A stretch of 64,000 nt of DNA from Magallana gigas (GCF_963853765.1 NC_088856.1:31186001-31250000), one strand, 5' to 3'; shown: positions 49,505 to 64,000, counted from the stretch's first letter. A program made the numbers and translations. Notes: generated by a model from the sequence alone, not told the origin.

Positions 49505-49926
49505 TATTATACCTCATTATAAATATTCTAAACAATGTGTTTTCTGATTGGTTCTAAGTTATCACGTGATCGGGCCGTAAAACTTCATATTTCCAGGCCG
49601 TCGGCATGGTTTTCATCATATTACATAGTACGTGTATTTTCCCGAAATATAGTTCTCGTTTGTTGAACGAAAACTCCTGAGAGTAGTAGATGTCACAATA
49701 GCTTGGTTTACGTCACAAAATTAATGATAATGTGCAGAATTTTAAAGTTTACCTTTATTCCAAAGGTTTTCCTTGTTTTGGTATATTAAACAATTTATTG
49801 CATGAATGTTCGGGAAACATGAAGACTTATTCAGCCAAGAAATATCATATTCCCCTCGGGCGATGATTTTTCTTGGCTGAATAAGTCTTCATATTTCCCT
49901 CACTATCATGCAATAAATGTATAATA
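49505..49926. mobile_element. Non-autonomous element with TATTATAC termini and a 3' long hairpin
   Basis: Starts TATTATAC, has CTGATTGG about 40 bp in, a hairpin at 49795-49916 (arms GAAGACTTATTCAGCCAAGAAA / TTTCTTGGCTGAATAAGTCTTC), and ends GTATAATA. Same layout as 13838-14297. Confidence 0.7.
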
Positions 49927-50262
49927 TTTCCATTTCTAATTTTTTTTTTCTCTGTGATAACTCTGAGAAAGTTGTCGGAGTTTATTTCTTGATAATTCTG
50001 CCGGAATGTAAATTAGGCAGGTCGATAGGTCAGGAGCTAAGGAGACCTAATACGCATGCAAATCCCGTGCGCATCTGTCTCTGTGTCTGATGCTAAGAAG
50101 GCCAAATATGCATGTAAATCCCGTGCGGCTGCCTATGTGTTTGACGTCAGTGGGCGAGGACTATTGAAATTGGCATGGAAGTCCTCGTGTGATTATAGTC
50201 TATGTCTACATTTTTTAAGTTTAAATCTACAATTTTATTTTGATCACAATGAAATGGTAATA

Positions 50263-50387
50263 TAAGGAATCACTGTCTAGTTTTGAGAGTATGCCAGGGA
50301 CATCAACGCCCGTTATGCAAATTATCCCATGTTTCCCTCTATTGTTGATGCCCTGGCATACTCTCAAAACTAGACAGTGATTCCTTA
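50263..50387. mobile_element. 125-bp palindromic mini-element
   Basis: TAAGGAATCACTGTCTAGTTTTGAGAGTATGCCAGGG(A)CATCAAC ... exact reverse complement, with a ~35-bp spacer. Confidence 0.85.
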
Positions 50388-50399
50388 AATAACACACCT

Positions 50400-51000
50400 A
50401 TACTTAAGGAGTTATAATTTACATCCATCATTTAAGAAGAAGTTGGATAGAATCCATACTTCAAGAGCTTAAATTGTCCATAAATTAAGAGGATGTTTTA
50501 TATAGTCCATTCTTAAGGAGCTAAAATTGCCCATCAATTAAGAAGACATTTTATATAGTCCATTCTTAAGGAGCTGAAATTGTCCATAAATTAAGAGGAT
50601 TTTTTATATAGTCCATTCTTAAGGAGCTAAAATTGTCTATTAATTAAGAGGACATTTTATATAGTCCATTCTTAAGGAGCTTAAATTGTCCATTAATTAA
50701 GAGGACGTTTTATATAGTCCATTCTTAAGGAGCTAAAATAGTCCATTAATTAAGAGGACGTTTTATATAGTCCATTCTTAAGGAGCTAAAATTGTCCATT
50801 AATTAAGAGGACATTTTATATAGTCCATTCTTGAGGAGCTAAAATTGTCCATTAATTAAGAGGACATTTTATACAGTCCATTCTTAAGGAGCTAAAATTG
50901 TCCATAACTTAAGAGGACGTTTCATATAGTCCATTCTTAAGGAGCTTAAATTGTCCATTAATTGAGAGGATGTTTTATATGTCCAAAATTTAAGAGCTTT
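50400..51000 (+). repeat. 53-54-bp tandem repeat array (about 10 units)
   Basis: TATAGTCC anchors at 50501, 50554, 50607, 50660. Unit is GAGCTAAAATTGTCCATTAATTAAGAGGACATTTTATATAGTCCATTCTTAAG. Confidence 0.9.
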
Positions 51001-51583
51001 AGTCTGTAAAAAAAGGAATTCTGGGATTGGAAAATGGAAGTTATTTGGAAGCACATGATTGCTGTAGAAACATTGCTCAGTTTGTTGCTTATTGTTTTCA
51101 TAGCAGTTTCAATTGCCATTTTTGTTGCAATTTATAAATGGGGCAACTATTTTAGTAGATGGAATAGAGAATTCATGAGAGTTTAAAAAAGGTATTCTAG
51201 CTGTGATAAGTAATGAAGGTTCAGAATAATTTTAGAAGTGCTGAAAGTTTTTGTGAATTTTTTTTTTTTCTGTTATAGAGTTTTTCTTGAAGTTCTGCTT
51301 TAGATTAAATAAAACCCTCTACATTTTGGCAACCAAGTGTATGCTTCACAGAATGAGCTTAAAAAGCTTGGTTAGAGAAAATAAATTCATGGTCTCTGAG
51401 AAATATGTGCAATATTTACTGTATCTTTTTCTGTACATCCATATTTGGGTGACGTAGGTCTTGAAGTTTTGTTGTTGGCTATACACTCAACAGTGCTTTC
51501 TTACATTATACAATAAGCATAGCTTTTGTATATTTTTGCATTAGTATTATTAAAAATTTCCTTTTTTTAATAGAAGAATCAAG

Positions 51584-54500
51584 ATGCCAGGTCGTAAAAG
51601 AAAAAAGTTGAGTAGAAGTAATAATGGTCAAAGTGAATCAAAAGGTAAATAATTCCTAAAAAATTTAGTTGTTGCTGCTTGCATGGCTTTCCTCAAGATT
51701 CAAATGTTAACAAAGTCTTTGGATTCAATGATTTCAATCAGCTAGAATTTAAAGTAATTGACCTTAAGATATGAATAAAATATGAATAAAATAACACAAA
51801 TCATGCAGATTGACATATAGAGTGTGAAAATATTGTATGACTTTTTTCCATAAATTGTTAAAGTGTAAAATGAAAGCAAAGATAGATTATTGCAAAAATA
51901 TCTATTATATTGTAGCAAACATTTGCATGAAATTTCAAAATTTGAAATAAATTTAGAGACATTGTTAGCTTGTCAGTTAGGACATGATTTTCTAAAGTGA
52001 CTTTCTTTTTCATTTCAGGATCACCAAAATTGTTTATGGAAGGTAAATTTAAATATCAAATCATTTATAGCAAATCAATTTTAATGATAAGAAAGATATT
52101 TCAGAAAAATATATATACTTACATTTTAAAAAAAAAGTTATCATAACCATAGGTTAACATGTATGGATACAAGATGTGATGTGGAAAAGGGTATACATGT
52201 ATTATTTTGTTTATTGCATACTTGGTAATAGAAAGTGGTCATTTTTGACTACTAGTATATATGTGTATCATTTTTTTTAACAGGAGACCCTATATTTTGC
52301 CTAATGGATATGGGAGTATGGTGGCCTGGATTTGTGTTGGATGTTTGTGCAAATGGTGTTGTCTCTGTGGCATTTTGGAATGAAAATTCTATGTAAGTTT
52401 ATTTATTTTATAACAGATTTGGAGAATGCTACCATCCTTTATAATGTAGATGCATATAACGAGAATGTATGTAAAAACATGGTCTAGAATCTTTGTCTGT
52501 AATATACTGTGGCACCTTCATTACTAACTTCCTGTAGACACTGCCTATCTAATACACTGTACTACTTAAATTGTCATCAAATTATGGTTATTAGCCCTCC
52601 CTACTCTATTTCAGGAAATATTTTCAAAATGATAGGTTGACAGATGTTTAGAGATTATTAAATCAAAAATCGAATGTATTATTTTATATATATAGGGTTA
52701 TCAAAAAGTTTGTAGACAGATGCAATAGAATTAATCCTATGAAGTCTGCATACAAAATTTATAAGGAACATAAAACAACAAAAATGTTAGAAATTTTAAC
52801 TTGTTACATTGATAATTTTCCAGATTAATTAACTCTTCTGAGTTGAATATATTTCACAGTCAAGATTTATTTGGATTTTTTACAGAGTGAAAAGATCATT
52901 GTCAAAACTTGTAAAATTTGACAAGAATTCAAGCTTGATAATATCATGTATAGGTAATATATTTAGAAGATTATATATTGTTAATGTTTATCAAGTTACA
53001 GTAAAACACACTTATAGCCAACATGCTTGATGCTTTTAATGAATTGACACTTGAAATTTAAAAGTTTCATTCCCCATGATTTCAAAAATATACATGTATT
53101 ACAAATTTTACAGTTATAACAATTGAGTTATGCTTAAGGACATATGCAAGTTACCTTACCTACTGGTAATTTTTCAAGATCAGATGCTCATACACAAAAA
53201 ATTGGCATGCATTACTAGGTTTTTTTGGGAAGATATCAAATCATGAATTTTTTTGCATTATTCAACATGTTCAAAGAAAAATATACAAAAATTTTGAAAC
53301 AAAAATTCTATATTTTTTCCATCAAAATTTGTTCTAGAAGAGGTGTACAAATCCATATATAGACATTAAAAGTATTGCACACAGGTCCTTGATTTAGTGG
53401 AACTCTTCAACTATAGTGAAGAGCCCAATAAAGTTCAAACTATAATGTTGTGTATGACCTTAAAGTGAAGTAAACTCGTGCATTCCTAGCATTTTGTTAT
53501 ATAAGTATGTTTTACTGTGTATTTCTTTTATTCTAAATGTTGCTTTGTTGGTACTAATAGATGTGGCATTTCTACTGAAAATAATGTTTACTCTAAAAAT
53601 TAGCAAAGCCAAAGGATAAGATCAAATTTCTTCTGAATTTCTCAGAAAAAGGTAATGAAATCTGCACTGCACTGTACCGAACTTAAAAAAAGTTTTTGTA
53701 CTTTATGTTGGAGTATATAACCCTAATTACACATAAAGATCATGATAATTTTCAAACCTTCCACTGCAAAACCTTTCAAGACATAGGTAGTTTATAGCTT
53801 GAATTTCATGCTCAAAAACATTGTATGTAACAGTCTGCCATTTTGAATTTTGGTGGGACTTTCCAAGATTTTTTTGTTTGTTTACACAGGTAAATCACAT
53901 GATTTCTTACTGGAGTTTGATGTTATCATCTATTGTTAATCTGCAGATGGCCACCTGTGTTCTGATAATTTGTAAACAAGCAGTAATTTCAAGTCAAATC
54001 AACAATGAAATCATATGCATCAGAAGTCATCATTAAGGGTTGGGGTCTAGGCATCAAAAGTCATCATTAAGGGATAAAGGAGGGAAAGGTCTGAGAGGAA
54101 TAGAATTAAGAAACAGTAGAAATGCCACTTGTATTTAAGACTAAATCTAAATTTAATTTCTGATTCTGATAAGGCCAATTTTCTACAAAACTGATGCAGG
54201 AAGGAGGCGTTTTATTCGCAATAAAATATTGAGGGAGGTATTTTTTAAATTGTAATTTTCGAATTTTCTTTAAAATAAAGATAATTTATTTACGGATGTA
54301 CTTTTCATGTCTGATCAAAAGGATTGCTTTATCCACTGTGTGTGAACATTGTAGGCAATGTCTTCGAATGTATTTTCAATCAAATTAGTAGGGCTGGGTA
54401 TTGGCCAGAGATTTTATATTGCGATATATTTGAATATTTTTAACTGTACTGCAATATTTATTGCAATATTTTCAGTGAAAATTACAATGGCATTTTCTTT

Positions 54501-57500
54501 TTATTAACTTTAATATACACGGAATGTTCATAACTTGTATAAATTCAACATTAATGCAGTGAATGTGTTCCTTAACAATGGAATAATCTTTAATTTCAGA
54601 AAAATTAGAAAAAAAGAAACGCCACAGCTTGATTAAAAAATACAAGGATGACCTATGCTTTGCAAGCTCAGTGGAGCTATCATCTGACACTTCCATCCCC
54701 TCAGGAGATTCAACCTCTTTAGTCAGTGAAGAAAGTATGACAGTCCAGTCCTCTGTTGCAAGCATGGATGCAACTGTGCCCTGTACAAGAACTGCAGAAG
54801 AAACTTCTGGAATGGTGTGCTCAGCAACTGTGTCAATGTCAGTGGATGAAGCAAACATGGCCCTGTGGAGTCACTTAACAGATTTTGAGAAAATGCTTCT
54901 CAAAACTCAAAATCTTGTGGAAATACGAGGCAAAGTATGTATTAGATTTGTTTATCAGAGAATGTAATTCAAATGTGTAGCAAAATCATTTTTCTATCCT
55001 AATATCTGCTTTATAAGCATTTCTAATTAATAATTAATTAATTAATAATTATATCATGTCTCATGCTTAAAAATGTAGTTAGTTCAGCTATGTGTGTTCT
55101 GAGTTTACTGATTATTATTACTTGTACAATACATGTAATTTTTATTACTTGAGGTCAATACATGTAAAAACTTTTTTGATGAAAACTAGTACATGTATGT
55201 ACTGTCATTACCTTAGATTATCTCTAATAAGCAAATGAACCATGAGTTTTCTAACTTGTCAATATTTTTCATGCAGACTGGTAGGGGTGTACCTGTCTTA
55301 ATCCCAAAGGAAACAAACAAAGTGCTGGAATATTTGAGTGACCCAGTTGCCAGACAAAGGGCAAGCATTCGACCAGAGAATAACTACATGTTTGCCAATA
55401 CCGGTGAGTGGTAACTACAATGAAGCGCATTGAAGTGGTAAAATTTTCCATTTGGATGAAATATTCTGAGTCATGTTTTGAACGTCAATTATAACATTAC
55501 ACCACGCCCATTTCTTTAGAAACGAGAAAAAAAAAATAGCCGTCGTAATGTTTTAGGACACCCCATTTTCCGCAACAAGCAACATGAGTTACACTGACAT
55601 GAATATTTTTAAATACGAAAAAGCTATATATAAAGTCTCCGCTTCTGTAATAAAAGCATTGCAACAAATATGTACATAATTATGATTTTGTTTACCGGAG
55701 TAAGCATAACGCATGTATCAGTTGAACACGTTTATGTAGACCGTCAATTTGATTGGCTATTATATTTATGGAATACTTGTTCTACAGGTGTTCTATTGAA
55801 TCATTTGACCGATTTTTCCTTTCTAAAGAAATGGGCGTGTCTAAAGATAGCTGAAAACGTTCAATCCAAACGAAAAATTTTACCACTTCAATGCGCTTCA
55901 TTGTATGTTTTATTTGTATTTACCCAAATTAGGTTTATTTATTGTAAGACTTGTTTGTGATCATGTTTGTTGTTGGTTATACAGGTCGCACTGTTGTTCG
56001 AGCAGGGGAATCACTTGATCAAGTGAAATTCAGAAGTGAAGTTGAATTGAGATTCTATGCCAACAACTTGAGAAAACACACTGCAACAATTGCCCAGGTT
56101 TGCTTAATTTTTCTTAATTTAAAATTATAATATTAAAGCTGAAAAAAATTGGCATTATAGTTCTCAAGCCTTTGCACATCTGTTGAGGTAGCCTCAATCC
56201 AAATTTTATCGTATTTTTGATAAAATGAAAACTTGGTAATGTGGAAACCAATCTTGAAAAAAAAATTCCACCCTCACTCTTTCTTAGTTTAGTAGTCGAA
56301 CATTGCTTCTGGTAGCCACTTGCAAAGGGACTTGGTTAATTCATGAAAAAAAAATACATTTGAAGATCATGCCTACAAGTTTTACATAATGACATTGAAG
56401 CAATTAATGGATAATGGGACTTTGACATGGAAAGAATATCATGAACAAAGAATTGGTCTCATTTTTGTATATAGAAAATTTGGGTATTAAAAAATACCTC
56501 CCATATAATTTAGAGCCGATAAATGATTTTAGAAAATGCCCCCTACTCACATCTGTTTTAGAAGAAGATGCCCGAGAACCAGAAAATTAAGTTTATGTAG
56601 CTTTCTTTTTATGCGCTCGGATCGATAGATCCCGGGCGTATATTGTTTTTGTCCTGTCTGTTTGTCTGTTTATCTGTTTGTCTGTTTGTCTGTTTGTCTG
56701 TCTGTCTGTTGTCAACTTTAACCTTCGCCATAACTTTTGAACAATAAGAGATAGAGACTTCATATTTAGTATGCATACTCCACTAATAAAGTACTTTCAA
56801 ATGACATCAAGGTCAATGACTTGTGACCTTGACTGTGACATATGCTAAAAATAGCTTTTTCCACTGTTTGTCATAACTTTTGAACCATAGGAGATAGGGA
56901 CTTCATATTTGGTATGCATACTCCACCCATAAAGTCCTTTCAAACGATGGCAAGGTCAATGATCTTGTGACCTTGACTGTGACCTATATGCTAAAAATAG
57001 CTTTTTACACTTTTTGCCATAACGTTTGAACCATGGAAGATAGGGACTACATATTTGGTATGCTTACTCCACCGATTACGTTCTTTCAAATGACACCATG
57101 GTCAATGACCTTGTGACCTTGACTGTGACCTATATGCTGAAAATAGCTTTTTCCACTGTTTGTCATAACTTTTGAAGCAAAGGAGATAGGGACTTCATAT
57201 TTGGTATGCATACTCCACCGATAAAGTCCTTTCAAACGACGGCAAGGTCAATGATCTTGTGACCTTGACTGTGACCTATATGCTAAAAATAGCTCTTTAC
57301 ACTTTTTGCCATAACTTTTGAACCATAGGAGATAGGGACTTCATATTTAGTATGCATACTCCACTGATTAAGTTCTTTCAAATGACACCATGGTCAATAT
57401 GCTAAAAATATATTTTTTTAACTTTGTTGCCGCTGGGCGCATAGTGTTTCACAAACACATCTTGTTTTTTTCCTGGCAAAAGATGGATTTTTAAGTTCAA

Positions 57501-60087
57501 TTAGTTCAAAGAAAAATTCTGAATTTCTGTTTAGGCCCTTAATCTGAATGACACCGAGATGAAATATATCTGCAATCACCTTGGCCATACACAGAAGGTC
57601 CATGACCTTGTATACAGACAAACATCTGGAATGATCGAGAGATTAGACATTGCAAAGCTTATGTTAATTCAGGAATTCAACGTTGTTGGCAAATACCAAA
57701 ACAAGAAGCTGTCGGAGATTCAGTTTGACGGTAAAAAAAAACTTTAAAAACATTTTAAAAATTTTGAAAGGAAATCACATAGTGATCAAATACATTTAGA
57801 TAAGCATTGATTAGTTAGTTTGCAAATACATTTAAAGTATATGCTGTAAAATGTTCATTCATTGTAGAACTTGGAACACTTGAGAGAAAAATTCAAGACC
57901 AAGATCAAGAACAGCAAGGTAATTATATCCAGTCAAACATTGGTATCTCAAACTCAAACGGACCGATAAAAGTCGCAATATACCTAAAGATTTTTTCAAT
58001 GATTAGGGTATATCATGTAGACTTTTTGAGACTTCAATTTGGATATAACATCATTTTCATATATCTATCATAGTATTTGAGATACTAGATTTTTAGATAG
58101 CAACAATCAATTGTATGTTCCTCATTGTATCAGTTATAGCAACTGCAAGTTCTTGGGGTACCCATCTTTTTTGGCAACTCATACCACTAATGTTGATGAG
58201 CAATGATAATTTTTTCTCCCCTAAATTTGAAATTGGGATGAGGGATTTGGTGTTAGCACTTTGGGTTTAATTCATGTAATAGAAGTGGACTGCATAGATA
58301 GTTATCTCTCTCCTGTATTTAACAGATAAGCCAATTCCATGGTTATTGAATGTGACTTTTAATGTTTGAAATACATTATTTTTCAAACCCAACGGCATGT
58401 ATGTAATACACTGAAATGTATCATCGAACCTTTATGATGTCACAGAATTTTTTTTTTACGTCAAACGTTTATCCAAACATATACGCACATCTATGACCTC
58501 TTGACCCCATACCGGTATTTATACAGTTAAAGATACGCATTGCTTTCAGTAGTGTTATGAAAAAAGTTACACTGATCCATGTGGTCTGTGACAATTAATA
58601 TTGGTGCGCATATGTTGTTTATTATTCAGTGATATCTTATTGATGCATATAATACTCAGTTTACAGTGTTCATTAAATTTAATTTGGTTATTCAGTTATT
58701 TAGTTATTCATGTTGTTTTTGCAGACACTGAAAATGCTGCTGATCAAGGGAAAAATGTGGATGATGGTATGTACATGTTAATTCTTAGGTTATCTCGAAT
58801 GTCAATAAGACAGGAATTAGAAAGAAACTTTTTCATTGTATTGACATGAACAGCATCTATGACGGTTTACATTATTTGCAGTAAACATATCACTGTATTT
58901 GTGATTTGTTTTTGGTACCTCATTAAAAACAACACTTCTTGATGTGTGATTCATCATGAATCCCTTACTTTATTTTCATGTATACAACATGGAATGCAAA
59001 GTCTATTTTAAAGCATTTTTAGGATCTAGATTATTGATATATGTGCCCCAAGCGAAATGGACAAAACAATTGGGGTTTTGTGTGTGTGTGTGTAAAACTT
59101 CAAAATTACCATTGCACAATAAAAATAAGCTGATTATGACAGCATCTTTCAAGTCTGCAACTTTGCAAATATTTAGGATACAGTGTATAGATGTGCATAT
59201 TGCCAGGAAATTCCGATTCCATTATTTTTGTCCTTAGAGTTTTGAATTTCCAGCTAGGTATATATAAGGAAATCTACTGGAATCAGCTCTCCTAATGAAA
59301 TTTTATGTGAAATATTTTATGTCCTTAAAAGACCCTATTGATATTGATAACAGAGTGTTCACAATTCAACACACACAGAGATTTTTTTATAGGATAGAAG
59401 TACACAAGCCCCCCCCCCCCCCCCCCCCCCCCTTTTGGCTTTGCCAATATTAACAATTTTATGTGGCTACATCATAAATTTGTTTCCATTAATTATTTAA
59501 ATGTGTAAATTGTCATTTGTTGGACATGGAGTTTTAATGTGATGAATTCTTGCAAATAATGCCCTTTTTGAATTTTACATACCCAGTATATTTAAAGTGC
59601 ACAGTGTCATTGTTGCATTGTCAACTTTTAGGGGAGTGTGGGGTAAATGAGCTTGCTCATTTTTTCTTATATTTTTTAACATATATTTTTGCATTGAAAA
59701 TGGAGTGATGGATGCTTATAATGGTTAAATACTCAGACAATGGAGAACGAAATGTTCTAAGCATAATTTTGGTCAGAAGTTTGAAATACACATAAAAGCT
59801 GTGAGATTTTACAATGCAACTCCATGTCTATTCTGTTGTGAAACAAATATTCTGATGTTTCTTTCTTTTTAGCTGAAAGAGTCAGATGGTCTCCAGCTGA
59901 AGAAGAGGAGATAAAGAAATACTTCTCTCGTTATTTTGAGGGACATTTTCAGAAGAAATGCCCCTCAAGGGAGCATTGCCTTGATGCTCTTAAAAAAAGC
60001 AAAGAAAATGGTGGAACAATTTTTAAGAGAAAATGGGAAACCTTGAAAATAAAAGTTTCCAATATGTTAGTCAAGATTCAAGTATGA
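51584..60087 (+). CDS. Eleven-exon gene or pseudogene: NLS + PWWP-like motif + C-terminal tyrosine recombinase domain + Myb/SANT-like tail (about 454 aa; Crypton-like)
   Basis: Exons 51584-51644, 52019-52042, 52284-52392, 53561-53651, 54600-54934, 55277-55403, 55985-56097, 57535-57730, 57868-57918, 58725-58766, 59873-60087, all GT-AG. Exons 1-3 and 5-11 join in phase without stops; exon 4 needs one extra base. Motifs: MPGRKRKK, GDPIFCLMDMGVWWPG, VEIRGKTGRGVPVL, NNLRKHTATIAQ, HLGHTQKVHDLVY, RVRWSPAEEEEIKKYF...RKWETLKIKVSNM. Confidence 0.72.
52999..53517. mobile_element. Diverged TA-type MITE in intron 3 of the recombinase-like gene
   Basis: CAGTAAAACACACTTATA ... TATAAGTATGTTTTACTG. TA on the left, TG on the right. 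Confidence 0.55.
56607..57466 (+). mobile_element. Second HINE family with (TGTC/TGTT)n microsatellite and five 146-bp units
   Basis: 5' TTTTATGCGCTCGGATCGATAGATCCCGGGCGTATATTG. Unit anchors at 56728, 56871, 57017, 57163, 57309. 3' hairpin GTGTTT-CAC-AAACAC then CTTGTT in a T-run. Confidence 0.82.
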
Positions 60088-60102
60088 AGTAGCTTATACA
60101 AT

Positions 60103-61345
60103 TTTTAGCTCACCTGAGCAGAAGGTTCAAGTGAGCTTTTCAGATCAAAATTTGTTTGTTATTTGTCGTAGCTGTCGTTGTAGTAGTAAACTTTTCACAT
60201 TTTAACCTTGTTCTCAAGAACCAATGAGTCAATTTCCACCAAACTTGCCAAAAAGTATCCTTAGGTGAAGGGGGTTCAAATTTGTTTAAATGAAGGGCCC
60301 TATTCCAAAGGGAGATAATTATGAATAAGTAAAAAATTAATGGCATATGTTAAAGATTTTCATCTCAAGAACCACTGGGCCTGGAAAGCTGAAACTCAAG
60401 TGGAAGCATCCTCAGGAAATGTAGATTCAAGTTTGTTGAAATCATGACTCCTGGGGGTAGCACGGGTTATCAAAATTTAACATAGACATATATAGGAAAA
60501 ATCTTCTTCGCAAGAACAGGAAAGCTGTGATTGGTCATAGTTAAATGATAGTATCCTCTGGTAGTGTATATTTGATGTAGTTCAAATCATGACCCCCCAC
60601 GATAAAGGGGGGCCACAATTGGGAATCTGAGTTTCACATAGGAAATACATAGGAACATTTTTAAAAATCTTTTTAAGAACAGCAAAGCCATGATTGGTCA
60701 GAGTCCTCTTGTAGTTTAGATTCACGTTTGCTCGAATCATGACCCCTTGGGCCATAATGAGATATAAATTTTTTTAAGAAGGAATTCATAGAACATTCTT
60801 TAAAATTCTTCTTCTTGAGAACACCAAAGCTCTTATTGTTCATATCATATCATTTATATGGAGGCATCCTTGGGTAGTGTAGATTCAAGTTTGTTCAAAT
60901 CTTTATCTGTAGGGGTTGAGTGGGGCCACAATGGGTGATCAAGGTAATATGTAGGAATACATAGGGAAAATTGTGAAAATTTTTAACAAGAACAAAGCTA
61001 TCATTGATCATCATTATAAAAGCATTGAAAAAAGTAATGTAGATTTAAATTTGTTCCATTGACCAACCAGGAGAAAAGAGGAGCCATTAAAAGTGGATTA
61101 AAGTTATACACAGGATTATAAAGGCTATATCAATAAATATTTTCATCTTATAAACAACAAAGTCATTTTGTATCATGTTAATTTAAAAGCATCCCCAGGA
61201 AGTATAGATTTAAGTTTGTTCAAATACCCCCTCCCCTTTTTTCTCTGAATCCACTTTTACTAGTATATTTCAAGATAAGAACTGAACTGATTTTTGCTTT
61301 TAGCCAGTTGCTCAGGTGAGTGATGTGGCCCATGGGCCTCGTGTT
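60103..61345 (+). mobile_element. Older HINE copy with decayed 166-bp-type units
   Basis: TTAGCTCACCTGAGC...GCTCAGGTGAG plus GGCCCATGGGCC hairpin. Internal fragments (GGAAGCATCCTCAGG, GTAGATTCAAGTTTG, GGGGCCACAAT) match the 15633 array. Confidence 0.8.
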
Positions 61346-61687
61346 TGTTTTTTTTTTTTTTTTTATTGTATGACACAAGAACTGAGATCAGAGAGGATCA
61401 ACTTGCTTTTTTCATTTTTGTTTTCCATAAGGCCTAGAAAAAAATGTTTGTTTCCTGTACCCCGGCCGACCCATTCAAATTAGCCTCTTGTTGATTTTTC
61501 TCCTGCTAAATGGCAAAACTGTGTTTGATCAAATCAGCTGTTTCCATTTATTCAAAAGAAATTAGTTGTAGCTTTACTTGAGACATAAAATATATCAAAA
61601 TACTTCACATTAACCCTAAATATAAAGAGTAATCATTACTTTAAAATAAATTTCCCCCACATCTTTTTGAAGTTTGTTTTCTGTCGC

Positions 61688-62416
61688 TTTGCAGCCATGT
61701 TGGTTGTACACTATAAATATAACACCTGGATGAATCAGTCCGAGAATGTTTTTGGAGACTGTTACAGGAAACAAACATATTTTTTTGAAGCCTAAAAGAA
61801 AATTTGATGTACTGATTTTTGTGACTTAGTAATGGAACTTGTTTGGAGAAATTTTTGTTACACTGTTGAACATTTGATATGATGTAGTGAAATTTCAACT
61901 CAAGATGGAGGATATTCCAATTGGATTTATATTATTTCATTCTCCTTATGACTACTCGGAAACATGCTCTTTTTGCTCAGATTTTGACATGGATGTTTTG
62001 GAAATATATATACATGGATTATGTTGTTTAACTTTTTTAAAAGTACCAGGGAAAGAGCCAATGCATTTAAAACAATGAGATTTTAAGTTTTGAAGTTTTT
62101 TATCCAAGAATTGAGTGATAGACATGTGACAGGTTTGAGGAAATGTATAAAGGATTCTAGAAACAACTATTAATGGACTGAAGCTTTAGAGGTGAAGAAA
62201 AAGGAAATGTTTGCAGCCATGTTGGTTGTACACTATAAATATAACACCTGGATGAATCAGTCCGAGAATGTTTTTGGGGACTGTTACAGGAAACAAACAT
62301 ATTTTTTTAAGCCTAAAAGAAAATTTGATGTACTGATTTTTGTGACTTAGTAATGGAACTTGTTTGGAGAAATTTTTGTTACACTGTTGAACATTTGATA
62401 TGATGTAGTGAAATTT
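61688..62416 (+). repeat. A-B-A structure: ~208-bp direct repeat flanking a copy of 47181-47325 + 47473-47646
   Basis: A1 61688-61895 and A2 62210-62416 are nearly identical. The insert matches the 47.2-47.6 kb region with about 150 bp missing. Confidence 0.9.
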
Positions 62417-63168
62417 AGTGCAACTTGGGATTTTTTTTAGTCACATTAACCAAAGGCTAATGTAAGCTTTTCTAATCACAAAGTATCCAGCATCTGTCTG
62501 TCACTTTTTTTCTTAATTTCAGATATTGTAGATTCAGGTTTTTTCATATTATGACCCCCTGAGTTAGGTCACAACAAGGGTCCAAGTTTAATGCAGTAAT
62601 AAATAGGAAATATCTTAAAAGTCTTCTCAAGAATAGCAAAGCTATTGTTAGCCATATTAATTTTTAAAATGTAAAATCTTTTCAAGGAATAGCAAAACAT
62701 AATTCAAAGCATCTGTATTTAGTGAAGTTTTATTTTGAAAAAATCTTTAAAAAGTCTTTCTCAACAACAACAAATTCATAATAAGCAATATATATAATTG
62801 AATTATTCTTTGAAATGTGCATTAAAGTTTGTTCAAATTTTGACCCCCTGGAGTGGGGAGAAGTTGATATAAGATTTATGTTGGGAAATAACCTAGAATG
62901 ACCATTTTTGTCTGGTTAGTGTCATGGCCAATTGGCTCTTTTGTTAATATAGCCAAAAGTTTCAAACAGACATGTATGACACTATACAGGTATGATCAGA
63001 AAAAGAGAAAAAAACATTGGCAAATCCGAATTTTAAATGTATGTACATATATCTTGAAATACATTTACTCTCATTTTGTAGTATATGAAATACTGATTTG
63101 GTTGGATTTGTATGTTGAACATTGAAGAGTTAATCAATTTCAATTTATGACTGAAAAAGTTAAAAATG

Positions 63169-63169
<1 letters not shown>

Positions 63170-63242
<73 letters not shown>
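63170..63242. repeat. (AT)n microsatellite
   Basis: About 36 perfect AT units. Confidence 0.98.
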
Positions 63243-63250
<8 letters not shown>

Positions 63251-64000
63251 CAGACAACAACATGTTCCTAGAAAAAAAAAATCGCTAGAATTTGTAATTG
63301 AAGTAGGCCCCTATTGCTACTTGAACAAGTTTTATCACCTAAAATTGGGATACCTTACCAGGAGTATGGGCAAGACACCAGAGGGTGATATTTCTTAAAT
63401 AATCCTTATATAATCCCCATGATTAATCCCTTGAATCGCTTATCTCAAAAATTTTTAAACATTGAAAACAATTTAGAAATCACTGAAGAATGACAATTAT
63501 GAATAATTATTGATATTATACCATATATTTGAGGAACATGCTGTCTGTCCTTAAGTCCTCTAAGCTATGGTCTTAGGGCCTGGATTTAAGTTTTTAAGAT
63601 AACAAAGATTATGTATTTTATTTTGTTTTAAGAAAGATTATGTAATTTTAGTCTTGGTATATTTGTTTTAAAAAGAAAATTTGTAATCTTACTTTGTTGC
63701 AACAAGCACTGTCAAATAAAGTATATAATTTGTTGAAACATTTGATTTCATCGCATTACCATGGGAGGAAGGAGAACGGGTTTTAATTATTCTTGTAATA
63801 GAAAGGATACATTTAATTTTCCTTAGATAATCACCCCATCACCAAAGTGAGAACGTCTTGAACATGTTTACTTTTAAGAAATATATATATATTTAAGCTG
63901 ATGCAAAATATTTTCTGAAATGATGATCATCTATCTTGGAATGTCAGTGTTTGCTAAAACACACTATTACCATATTTACTTCCTATAATAAGATTTTTGG

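Follow-up and report, generated by a model that had tools for sequence, protein, structure and literature searches.

We analyzed a stretch of 64,000 nucleotides (nt) from the oyster Magallana gigas (GCF_963853765.1, NC_088856.1:31186001-31250000), hereafter the window, which belongs to contig C4. All coordinates are window positions, and all gene features lie on the plus strand. Positions 51584-60087 contain a gene of 11 exons, delimited by three-frame translation and by tblastn with an annotated relative. Every exon border conforms to AG/GT, and the spliced exons form an open frame of 1341 nt encoding 446 amino acids (aa). A preliminary description, made from the sequence alone, had proposed such a gene with a 454-aa model; the gene is real, and each motif quoted for it (RKRKK, VWWPG, IRGK, NNLRKH, LGH, VHDLVY and RWS) was located in the window in the proposed order. 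It had also been called cryptic, which it is not, nor is it unique: near-identical copies occur on C9 and C10, and partial copies on C1. In our view, the gene in the window is probably a crippled but still transcribed version of an oyster gene that occurs in few copies, belongs to a Crypton-like family and is borne by a Helentron.

Exon map, deletions and transcripts of the window gene

Exon 1 (51584-51644) holds the start codon and the basic motif RKRKK (51593-51607) and is identical to exon 1 of P0001, a 1647-aa "uncharacterized protein" of M. gigas at NCBI that is the product of the C9 locus. The 24-nt exon 2 (52019-52042) is followed by exon 3 (52284-52392), which encodes the core of a predicted Tudor/PWWP-type barrel, including VWWPG (52316-52330). 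Exon 4 (52886-52953, 68 nt) supplies the final barrel strand and the start of a helix; it is in frame, and it is through its inclusion that the reader domain stays in frame with the rest of the protein. No exon was found near 53600, where the preliminary description had placed an exon 4 with a 1-nt frame defect. In the next exon (54600-54934), 236 nt from the start of exon 5 are joined at 54833-54836 to the final 99 nt of exon 6; this fusion exon encodes a linker, part of one Ser/Thr repeat and, at its end, IRGK, with the codon of the β-hairpin Lys at 54932-54934. Exon 7 (55277-55403; TGRGVPVLIP...) precedes exon 8 (55985-56097), which carries Arg II within NNLRKH (Arg codon 56071-56073) and a 12-nt in-frame deletion relative to C9. 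Exon 9 (57535-57730) encodes the His of LGH (57586-57588) and the nucleophile Tyr of VHDLVY (57613-57615), and exons 10 (57868-57918) and 11 (58725-58766) encode an acidic linker. The last exon (59873-60087) comprises a putative Myb/SANT-like three-helix tail, with RVRWSP at 59878-59895, and the stop codon.

Splice-aware reconstruction of the C9 locus yielded 13 GT-AG exons that encode P0001 exactly, and the C10 locus contains nearly the same gene; P0002 (LOC117688559) is a 1700-aa version of P0001. The exon order proposed for the window gene equals that of P0001 and the C9 locus. P0001 starts with a basic segment and a Tudor/PWWP-type barrel with a helix. Next come five repeats of 106 aa rich in Ser and Thr, an acidic stretch of low complexity and a pair of C2H2-like zinc fingers, and after these a tyrosine recombinase of two domains, an acidic linker and a Myb/SANT-like three-helix tail; barrel, recombinase and tail are predicted folds. 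The window gene aligns to residues 1-165 and 1346-1647 of P0001, but lacks four residues within exon 8 and all 17 encoded by exon 12. Where C9 has an open exon of 1221 codons, the window holds just 335 nt. Compared with C9 and C10, the main deletion removes 3.75 kb; its breakpoints lie within exons 5 and 6 and show TCAA microhomology at 54833-54836, so that exon 5 of the preliminary description is present as sequence but is actually the fusion of the exon 5 start with the exon 6 end. Residues 166-1345 of P0001 are thereby gone, and with them the five 106-aa Ser/Thr repeats, the acidic low-complexity stretch, both zinc fingers, the whole N-terminal domain of the recombinase, and NRRRPGE with Arg I. 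A second deletion of ~250 bp (59161-59165, at 59163, plus strand), with CTT microhomology, took the 51-nt exon 12 that is present in C9 and C10. We also considered that the 3.75-kb difference might be an insertion in C9 and C10, and rejected this, as the extra DNA is one open coding exon with conserved recombinase motifs.

The window copy is therefore an internally deleted, crippled paralog, yet it is transcribed. Of a recombinase of roughly 375 residues it retains ~165 C-terminal residues. Its product is predicted from the coding sequence to be unable to cleave DNA or act as an active recombinase, because it has lost Arg I and, along with the N-terminal domain, some of the catalytic fold. The preliminary description had envisaged, as an alternative to a domesticated chromatin factor, a functional recombinase that is fused to a chromatin reader and integrates DNA at marked chromatin, and the Lys, Arg II, His and Tyr motifs do stand with a reader-like barrel in one open frame. 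This proposal is hardly credible given that Arg I, the DNA-binding domain at the N-terminus, the early catalytic domain and both zinc fingers are deleted and that exon 4 is unseen in RNA. Chromatin-targeted integration by the window gene is contradicted by the deletion map: with only the C-terminal part of a recombinase remaining, this copy is not fit for it. The tyrosine-recombinase assignment itself holds for the intact paralog, in both fold and motif order, but the window copy has lost Arg I and the N-terminal domain. In genome annotation, the appropriate label for the window gene is a deleted copy, not a new recombinase.

Transcription was assessed with contigs of four RNA runs mapped on 52000-57999; in addition, most words of the fusion exon are present in eight RNA runs. 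GT-AG joints in the contigs connect 52042 to 52284, 54934 to 55277, 55403 to 55985, 56097 to 57535 and 57730 to 57868, the first of them in all four runs, and in front of exon 2 the contigs have a loose end that matches the end of exon 1. The four runs thus contain the paths from exon 1 through exons 2 and 3, and from the fusion exon through exons 7, 8, 9 and 10. A contig of 2882 nt and three others cross 54833-54836 unbroken, and the long contig also has the 12-nt deletion of exon 8; the window-type allele is therefore transcribed. Loose ends at 54836 run into the intact exon 5 of C9 and C10, and therefore these copies are transcribed too.

Exon 4 is absent from the contigs of all four RNA runs, and three of the four join 52392 straight to 54600, which shifts the frame and leads to a stop after 76 codons. 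Exon 4 belongs to the C9 model of P0001, and its peptide is kept in the Lottia gigantea homolog P0019, so its inclusion in the window transcript would rest on the gene model and conservation rather than on RNA. The fusion of reader and recombinase in the preliminary description accordingly stands as one open frame if exon 4 is used, but the assembled transcripts skip exon 4 and leave the barrel out of frame. In RNA run X8, one contig leaves exon 3 at 52392 and continues into 46 nt found neither in the window nor in the regions of C9 and C10 that were compared; this segment could be an alternative exon, or the contig could be chimeric.

A search of the oyster's own genome with exon 9 returned 38 matches, many with stop codons; the matches on C9 and C10 are 100% identical, and one on C1 is 97% identical. 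The weaker matches, many of them stop-bearing, are mostly concentrated at 53-65 Mb of C1, which may be a repeat-rich compartment that collects such elements.

Predicted folds and conservation of the intact protein

We built an AlphaFold2 (AF2) model of residues 951-1647 of P0001 on an alignment of its relatives (predicted local distance difference test (pLDDT) 88; predicted template modeling score (pTM) 0.75). The top fold matches in the PDB are all tyrosine recombinases (XerA, XerH, Cre, lambda Int and Tn1549 Int), those in Swiss-Prot are all of the Xer/Cre/lambda type, and whole XerC/D chains cover model residues 187-560. Both domains of the tyrosine recombinase fold, the N-terminal helical DNA-binding domain and the C-terminal catalytic domain, were found in this part of the intact protein. 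As modeled, intact P0001 folds as a two-domain tyrosine recombinase of the Xer/Cre type. Across 44 relatives with 25-79% identity, R379/R380, E383, K429, R505/K506, G530/H531 and Y540 are invariant or nearly so; in P0001 numbering, the catalytic positions are 1329/1330 (Arg I), 1379 (Lys), 1455 (Arg II), 1481 (His) and 1490 (Tyr). At the position of the HxxR histidine, 3 residues ahead of Arg II, P0001 has Asn, and most relatives have Thr or Ser.

Profile searches returned little at the level of sequence. P0001 and the window exons gave no match to PF00589 (Phage_integrase), for which 2 of the 44 relatives scored at E ≤0.01 (best 3.7e-6) and 3 at E ≤5. Pfam searches with the single window exons and with the whole of P0001 returned no significant family, and PDB sequence searches with P0001 and with the family profile gave weak zinc-finger matches only. 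None of the 44 relatives matches the DUF3504, DUF3435 or GCR1_C models, even at E 5. The genome contains 118 DUF3504 matches, all at loci other than those of this family, and hhalign of the family against one genomic DUF3504 open frame gave a probability of 0.08%, though the catalytic motifs were aligned in register. Assignment to CryptonA/DUF3504 (PF12012) was thus rejected, on the grounds of no profile match, separate loci and no hhalign support. In the protein database, PF27049.1 is assigned to P0001 and P0002 only, both of which have the N-terminus, and not to the models P0003-P0005, which are shorter at that end.

The N-terminus was modeled with AF2 from 7 sequences, giving five strands at residues 31-75 (pLDDT 84-88) followed by a long helix. 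Foldseek with this model retrieved PWWP, Tudor and Agenet domains as well as C-terminal domains of retroviral integrases, at E 1e-3 to 1e-2. In the VIA exhaustive search, the PWWP domain 6kco ranked first (Z 10.4, 83 residues), with the PHF19 and MTF2 Tudor domains next (Z ~10). Language-model features in Atlas placed three PWWP clusters on top (0.87-0.88), a lead only. The Pfam PWWP model PF00855 gave E 0.52 for P0001 and 0.11 for P0019, corresponding to 11-13 bits against a cut-off of 25.6. We read the N-terminus as a Royal-family barrel of the PWWP type, as a predicted fold. The PWWP-like start noted in the preliminary description thus survives as a barrel fold of the Tudor/PWWP type, but its Pfam PWWP score lies below the cut-off. 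An N-terminus of the P0001 type, including the exon 4 segment, also occurs in P0019 of L. gigantea, and a variant (VWAQVKG...WP) in P0017 and P0013; most relatives have other N-termini. Among long proteins, relatives of the first 115 residues were limited to P0001 and P0002, and a hidden Markov model (HMM) built from the N-terminus found its seeds only.

The tail (P0001 residues 1578-1647), modeled as part of the recombinase model and not folded alone, comprises three helices with pLDDT ~95 and has conserved positions for W, E, F, P and K. When 25 tails were combined in a profile, its only PDB matches were Myb domains, at E ~1; the best Pfam Myb score among the relatives was 0.018, and an Atlas search with the tail gave no usable match. 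The tail likely adopts a Myb/SANT-like fold: the model gives a confident three-helix unit, with weak Myb profile signals.

A composite Helentron carrying the gene

The gene sits as cargo inside a composite Cg_HINE, a non-autonomous Helentron. Cg_HINEs are the non-autonomous Helentrons of Crassostrea gigas, and their structure was compared here as published (Vojvoda Zeljko et al. 2020, PMC7492417). C4, C9 and C10 agree from window position 46145 to 9553 bases past the window end (L020:9553), which is the right end of the HINE. The left end (46145-46262, plus strand), where this agreement starts, has an 11-nt subterminal inverted repeat, an internal sequence complementary to it and a microsatellite of GTCY. 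At the right end, an inverted subterminal repeat and the palindrome GGCCCATGGGCC are preceded by 48 copies of a 166-bp unit (L020:1175-9192). Hundreds to thousands of loci carry the first 100-117 nt and the last 304 nt of the composite, as a rule ~2 kb apart. The ends of the C4, C9 and C10 copies are sharp, and their flanks are unrelated and T-rich, with no target duplication; hence the flanks, repeats, T-rich target and missing target duplication that characterize Cg_HINEs were found at both ends of all three copies.

The composite unit measures ~27 kb (27-32 kb among the copies), and the copies differ by kilobase-scale insertions and deletions. Identity is ~99.2-99.3% between C9 and C10 and ~96-97% between C4 and either of them. 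Only three to five genomic copies exist of the ~19 kb that separate the left flank from the satellite, and the part of this low-copy cargo downstream of the gene (62214-64000, plus strand) leads past the window into the 166-bp satellite. Within this ~19-kb unit no other open frame of at least 100 aa was found. The recombinase is its sole enzyme and there is no reverse transcriptase, as in a Crypton.

The three large copies could alternatively be ordinary segmental duplications with HINE ends at their borders by coincidence. Their very large size, the kilobase-scale differences between them and the other borders of the partial copies on C1 fit this explanation. However, all three run from the first base of the HINE left end to the last base of the right end, and their unrelated, T-rich flanks with no target duplication are what published Helentron behavior predicts (PMC7492417). 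Because both breakpoints are common to all copies, three independent duplications are implausible, and we regard segmental duplication as quite improbable. In the Helentron-borne reading that we prefer, the gene and ~10 kb of its surroundings would make up the ~19-kb cargo, bounded by the left end of the Cg_HINE and its 166-bp satellite core. A HINE left end without its own terminator would have let rolling-circle transposition run on to the next HINE 3' end, taking the gene along, and the ~27-kb composite would most likely have been copied in this way to C4, C9 and C10. In the window copy, the two microhomology deletions and the 12-nt deletion would have stripped residues 166-1345 and exon 12, so that the remainder would consist of the barrel, a portion of one repeat, the ~165 residues at the end of the catalytic domain, and the tail. 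Helentron-type transport, and not the recombinase, accounts for the copy number of this subfamily. The locus would be a clear case of a Helentron-type element that has taken an entire gene of 15 kb, belonging to a different type of mobile element, to new chromosomes.

The cargo also contains a direct repeat on the plus strand. Its upstream copy consists of two segments (47176-47325 and 47473-47646) separated by a 147-nt insert and is 98-99% identical to the downstream copy (61889-62213, ~325 bp), which is bracketed by a 207-bp local duplication (61688-61895 and 62210-62416). The C1 partial copy is without the downstream repeat and without the 207-bp duplication. A related segment of ~140 nt lies 5-21 kb upstream of paralogous recombinase genes. 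An Rfam scan of 44000-64000 gave no match, so the conserved direct repeat is not a known RNA. The repeat may be left over from a head-to-tail junction of the recombinase element, or it may represent a conserved 5' region.

Further repeats surround the gene. The HINE-like insertion in intron 8 (56590-57398) consists of a 146-bp tandem repeat in 4.6 copies, preceded by a GTCY microsatellite; RNA contig depth reaches the thousands at 56600-56799, as expected for an abundant repeat. Just past the stop codon, 60100-61000 holds further HINE-like pieces, with left-flank-like sequence, a GTCY microsatellite and satellite-like repeats. Upstream of the gene, tandem repeats of 88 nt (47833-48653) and 53 nt (50424-50985) vary in copy number among C4, C9 and C10, and a palindromic element of ~150 nt (49777-49930), with 75-83% matches at many loci in both orientations, looks like a miniature inverted-repeat transposable element. 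The HINE left end lies 45 nt beyond the end of an intact TRIM-NHL-type frame of 554 aa (44436-46100, plus strand), which has NHL repeats and two B-box zinc fingers. Farther upstream, a satellite-like array at 15630-17550 is 67-80% related to the right-end arrays of the C9 and C10 units and is probably another HINE core.

Nature of the family and comparison with known systems

An exhaustive HMMER search with P0001 residues 951-1647 found 5046 representative clusters at E ≤0.001, including 806 at E ≤1e-30, with homologs in oysters, mussels, a scallop, gastropods, beetles and a fish. A second subfamily comprises four copies on three chromosomes (C7:40120541, C3:41860879, C5:5181266 and C5:25573891) that are 98.9-99.8% identical including their introns, and intron positions are conserved between subfamilies. 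Near-identical family loci were also found in Mytilus and Littorina, and the spread across molluscs, beetles and a fish is patchy. An intronless member (L026) is flanked by 22-nt inverted repeats of 91% identity, which, on a single contig, may be due to chance. We lean towards the family being a transposon and give the status of host gene a distinctly lower chance; the gene family would most likely descend from, or still be, an intron-bearing Crypton-like element with a recombinase only.

Several observations weigh against this reading, and against a window copy that is merely decaying. The RNA evidence consists of assembled contigs, which drop rare isoforms. The frame of the window copy stays open despite three deletions. 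Its coding sequence shows 11 nonsynonymous and 4 synonymous changes relative to C9 (15 differences), a ratio of nonsynonymous to synonymous changes (pN/pS) of 0.72 that is not distinguishable from 1, decides nothing and does not demonstrate neutral decay. No termini of the recombinase gene's own were found, the sole shared ends being those of the HINE, and for that reason the copy number of the subfamily says nothing on recombinase-driven mobility. P0004 of Saccostrea cucullata is 97% identical to P0001 of M. gigas over 696 residues; the best relative in Crassostrea virginica is 78% identical. This identity could reflect horizontal transfer, strong constraint or the sampling of paralogs. An intron-rich, expressed gene with conserved intron positions, modeled by NCBI as an ordinary gene, also fits a host gene family.

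These observations bear on a further explanation, namely that the family is domesticated and encodes a recombinase-derived chromatin factor, the window copy being a shorter paralog with its own use, for example as a non-catalytic reader and Myb-like DNA binder. It would account for the open 446-aa frame, for transcription and splicing of the copy in several studies, for exons that differ from C9 by ~1.1% against ~3% in most introns, and for the conserved intron positions and the close Saccostrea homolog. However, the assembled transcripts end their frame after 76 codons by skipping exon 4, and pN/pS cannot be separated from 1. Moreover, the catalytic residues of the family are nearly invariant, unlike those of domesticated DUF3504 genes, which lost theirs (PMC3212892), many copies are decayed, and several subfamilies include near-identical copies that lie on different chromosomes. 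Domestication is thus unlikely in our judgment, and a crippled copy of a Crypton-like, Helentron-borne gene remains the reading we favor.

Literature searches found no paper describing this family or a fusion of PWWP and recombinase. To our knowledge, animal recombinase-only transposons are poorly known, and those described are without accessory domains. Deleted copies of the P element act through repressor-like truncated products. By analogy, and as a tentative suggestion that we would not rate above a minority possibility, the intact relatives may form an undescribed, metazoan-wide lineage of recombinase-only mobile elements whose enzyme works without the HxxR histidine and, in molluscs, is tethered through its Tudor/PWWP-type reader and Myb-like domain. 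One member would have been captured whole by a Helentron and would now spread by rolling-circle transposition, and the truncated product of the expressed C4 copy could act in a repressor-like manner. The family is large, ranging from oysters to beetles and fish, and has been missed by every Crypton-related Pfam model. Its proteins link a predicted complete Xer/Cre-type fold to zinc fingers and a Myb-like tail, to which a putative chromatin-reader barrel is added in molluscs. Reader-guided integration becomes testable in the intact C9 and C10 genes.

Among reader domains, the predicted barrel resembles the Shuguo PWWP domain (6kco), the Tudor domains of PHF1, PHF19 and MTF2, and the PWWP domains of DNMT3A and DNMT3B in its five strands followed by a helix and in WWP at the second strand, with root-mean-square deviations of 1-2 Å for PHF19 and MTF2. 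It differs in its sub-threshold Pfam PWWP score; the model derives from seven sequences, and binding of methyl-lysine or DNA by the barrel, through an aromatic cage and a basic surface as in PWWP domains, is putative. The recombinase shares the two-domain fold of XerC/D, XerH, XerA and Cre (TM by hit 0.5-0.64 for XerC/D) and the spacing of Arg I, Lys, Arg II, His and Tyr. In contrast to these enzymes, to which it is just 11-17% identical, P0001 is eukaryotic, intron-bearing and ~1650 residues long, has added domains, lacks the HxxR His and has no significant PF00589 match.

Cryptons are eukaryotic elements that encode only a recombinase, with the catalytic tetrad R-H-R-Y (Kojima and Jurka 2011, PMC3212892). 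The family described here likewise has a single tyrosine-recombinase gene with neither a reverse transcriptase nor a second gene in the unit, carries introns as fungal Cryptons do, and shows a low copy number with many decayed copies. A C-terminal helical domain of DNA-binding type follows the recombinase, as GCR1_C does in CryptonF. Unlike Cryptons, the family has no match to DUF3504 (CryptonA), DUF3435 or GCR1_C, and the R-H-R-Y tetrad was not found in the 44 relatives, its histidine being replaced by Asn, Thr or Ser. It also has an added N-terminal barrel of predicted Tudor/PWWP type, Ser/Thr repeats and two zinc fingers, and no termini of its own have been defined of the kind that Crypton copies have in common, often with short direct repeats.

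The carrier agrees with Cg_HINE (PMC7492417) in its left subterminal inverted repeat, complementary internal repeat and GTCY microsatellite, its central repeat of ~166 bp, its right subterminal inverted repeat and palindrome, its T-rich site and its lack of target duplication. It differs in its contents. Ordinary copies measure ~2 kb, and the published account mentions at most ~1.2 kb of anonymous DNA between arrays (PMC7492417), whereas this one holds ~19 kb of low-copy DNA with a complete multi-exon gene.

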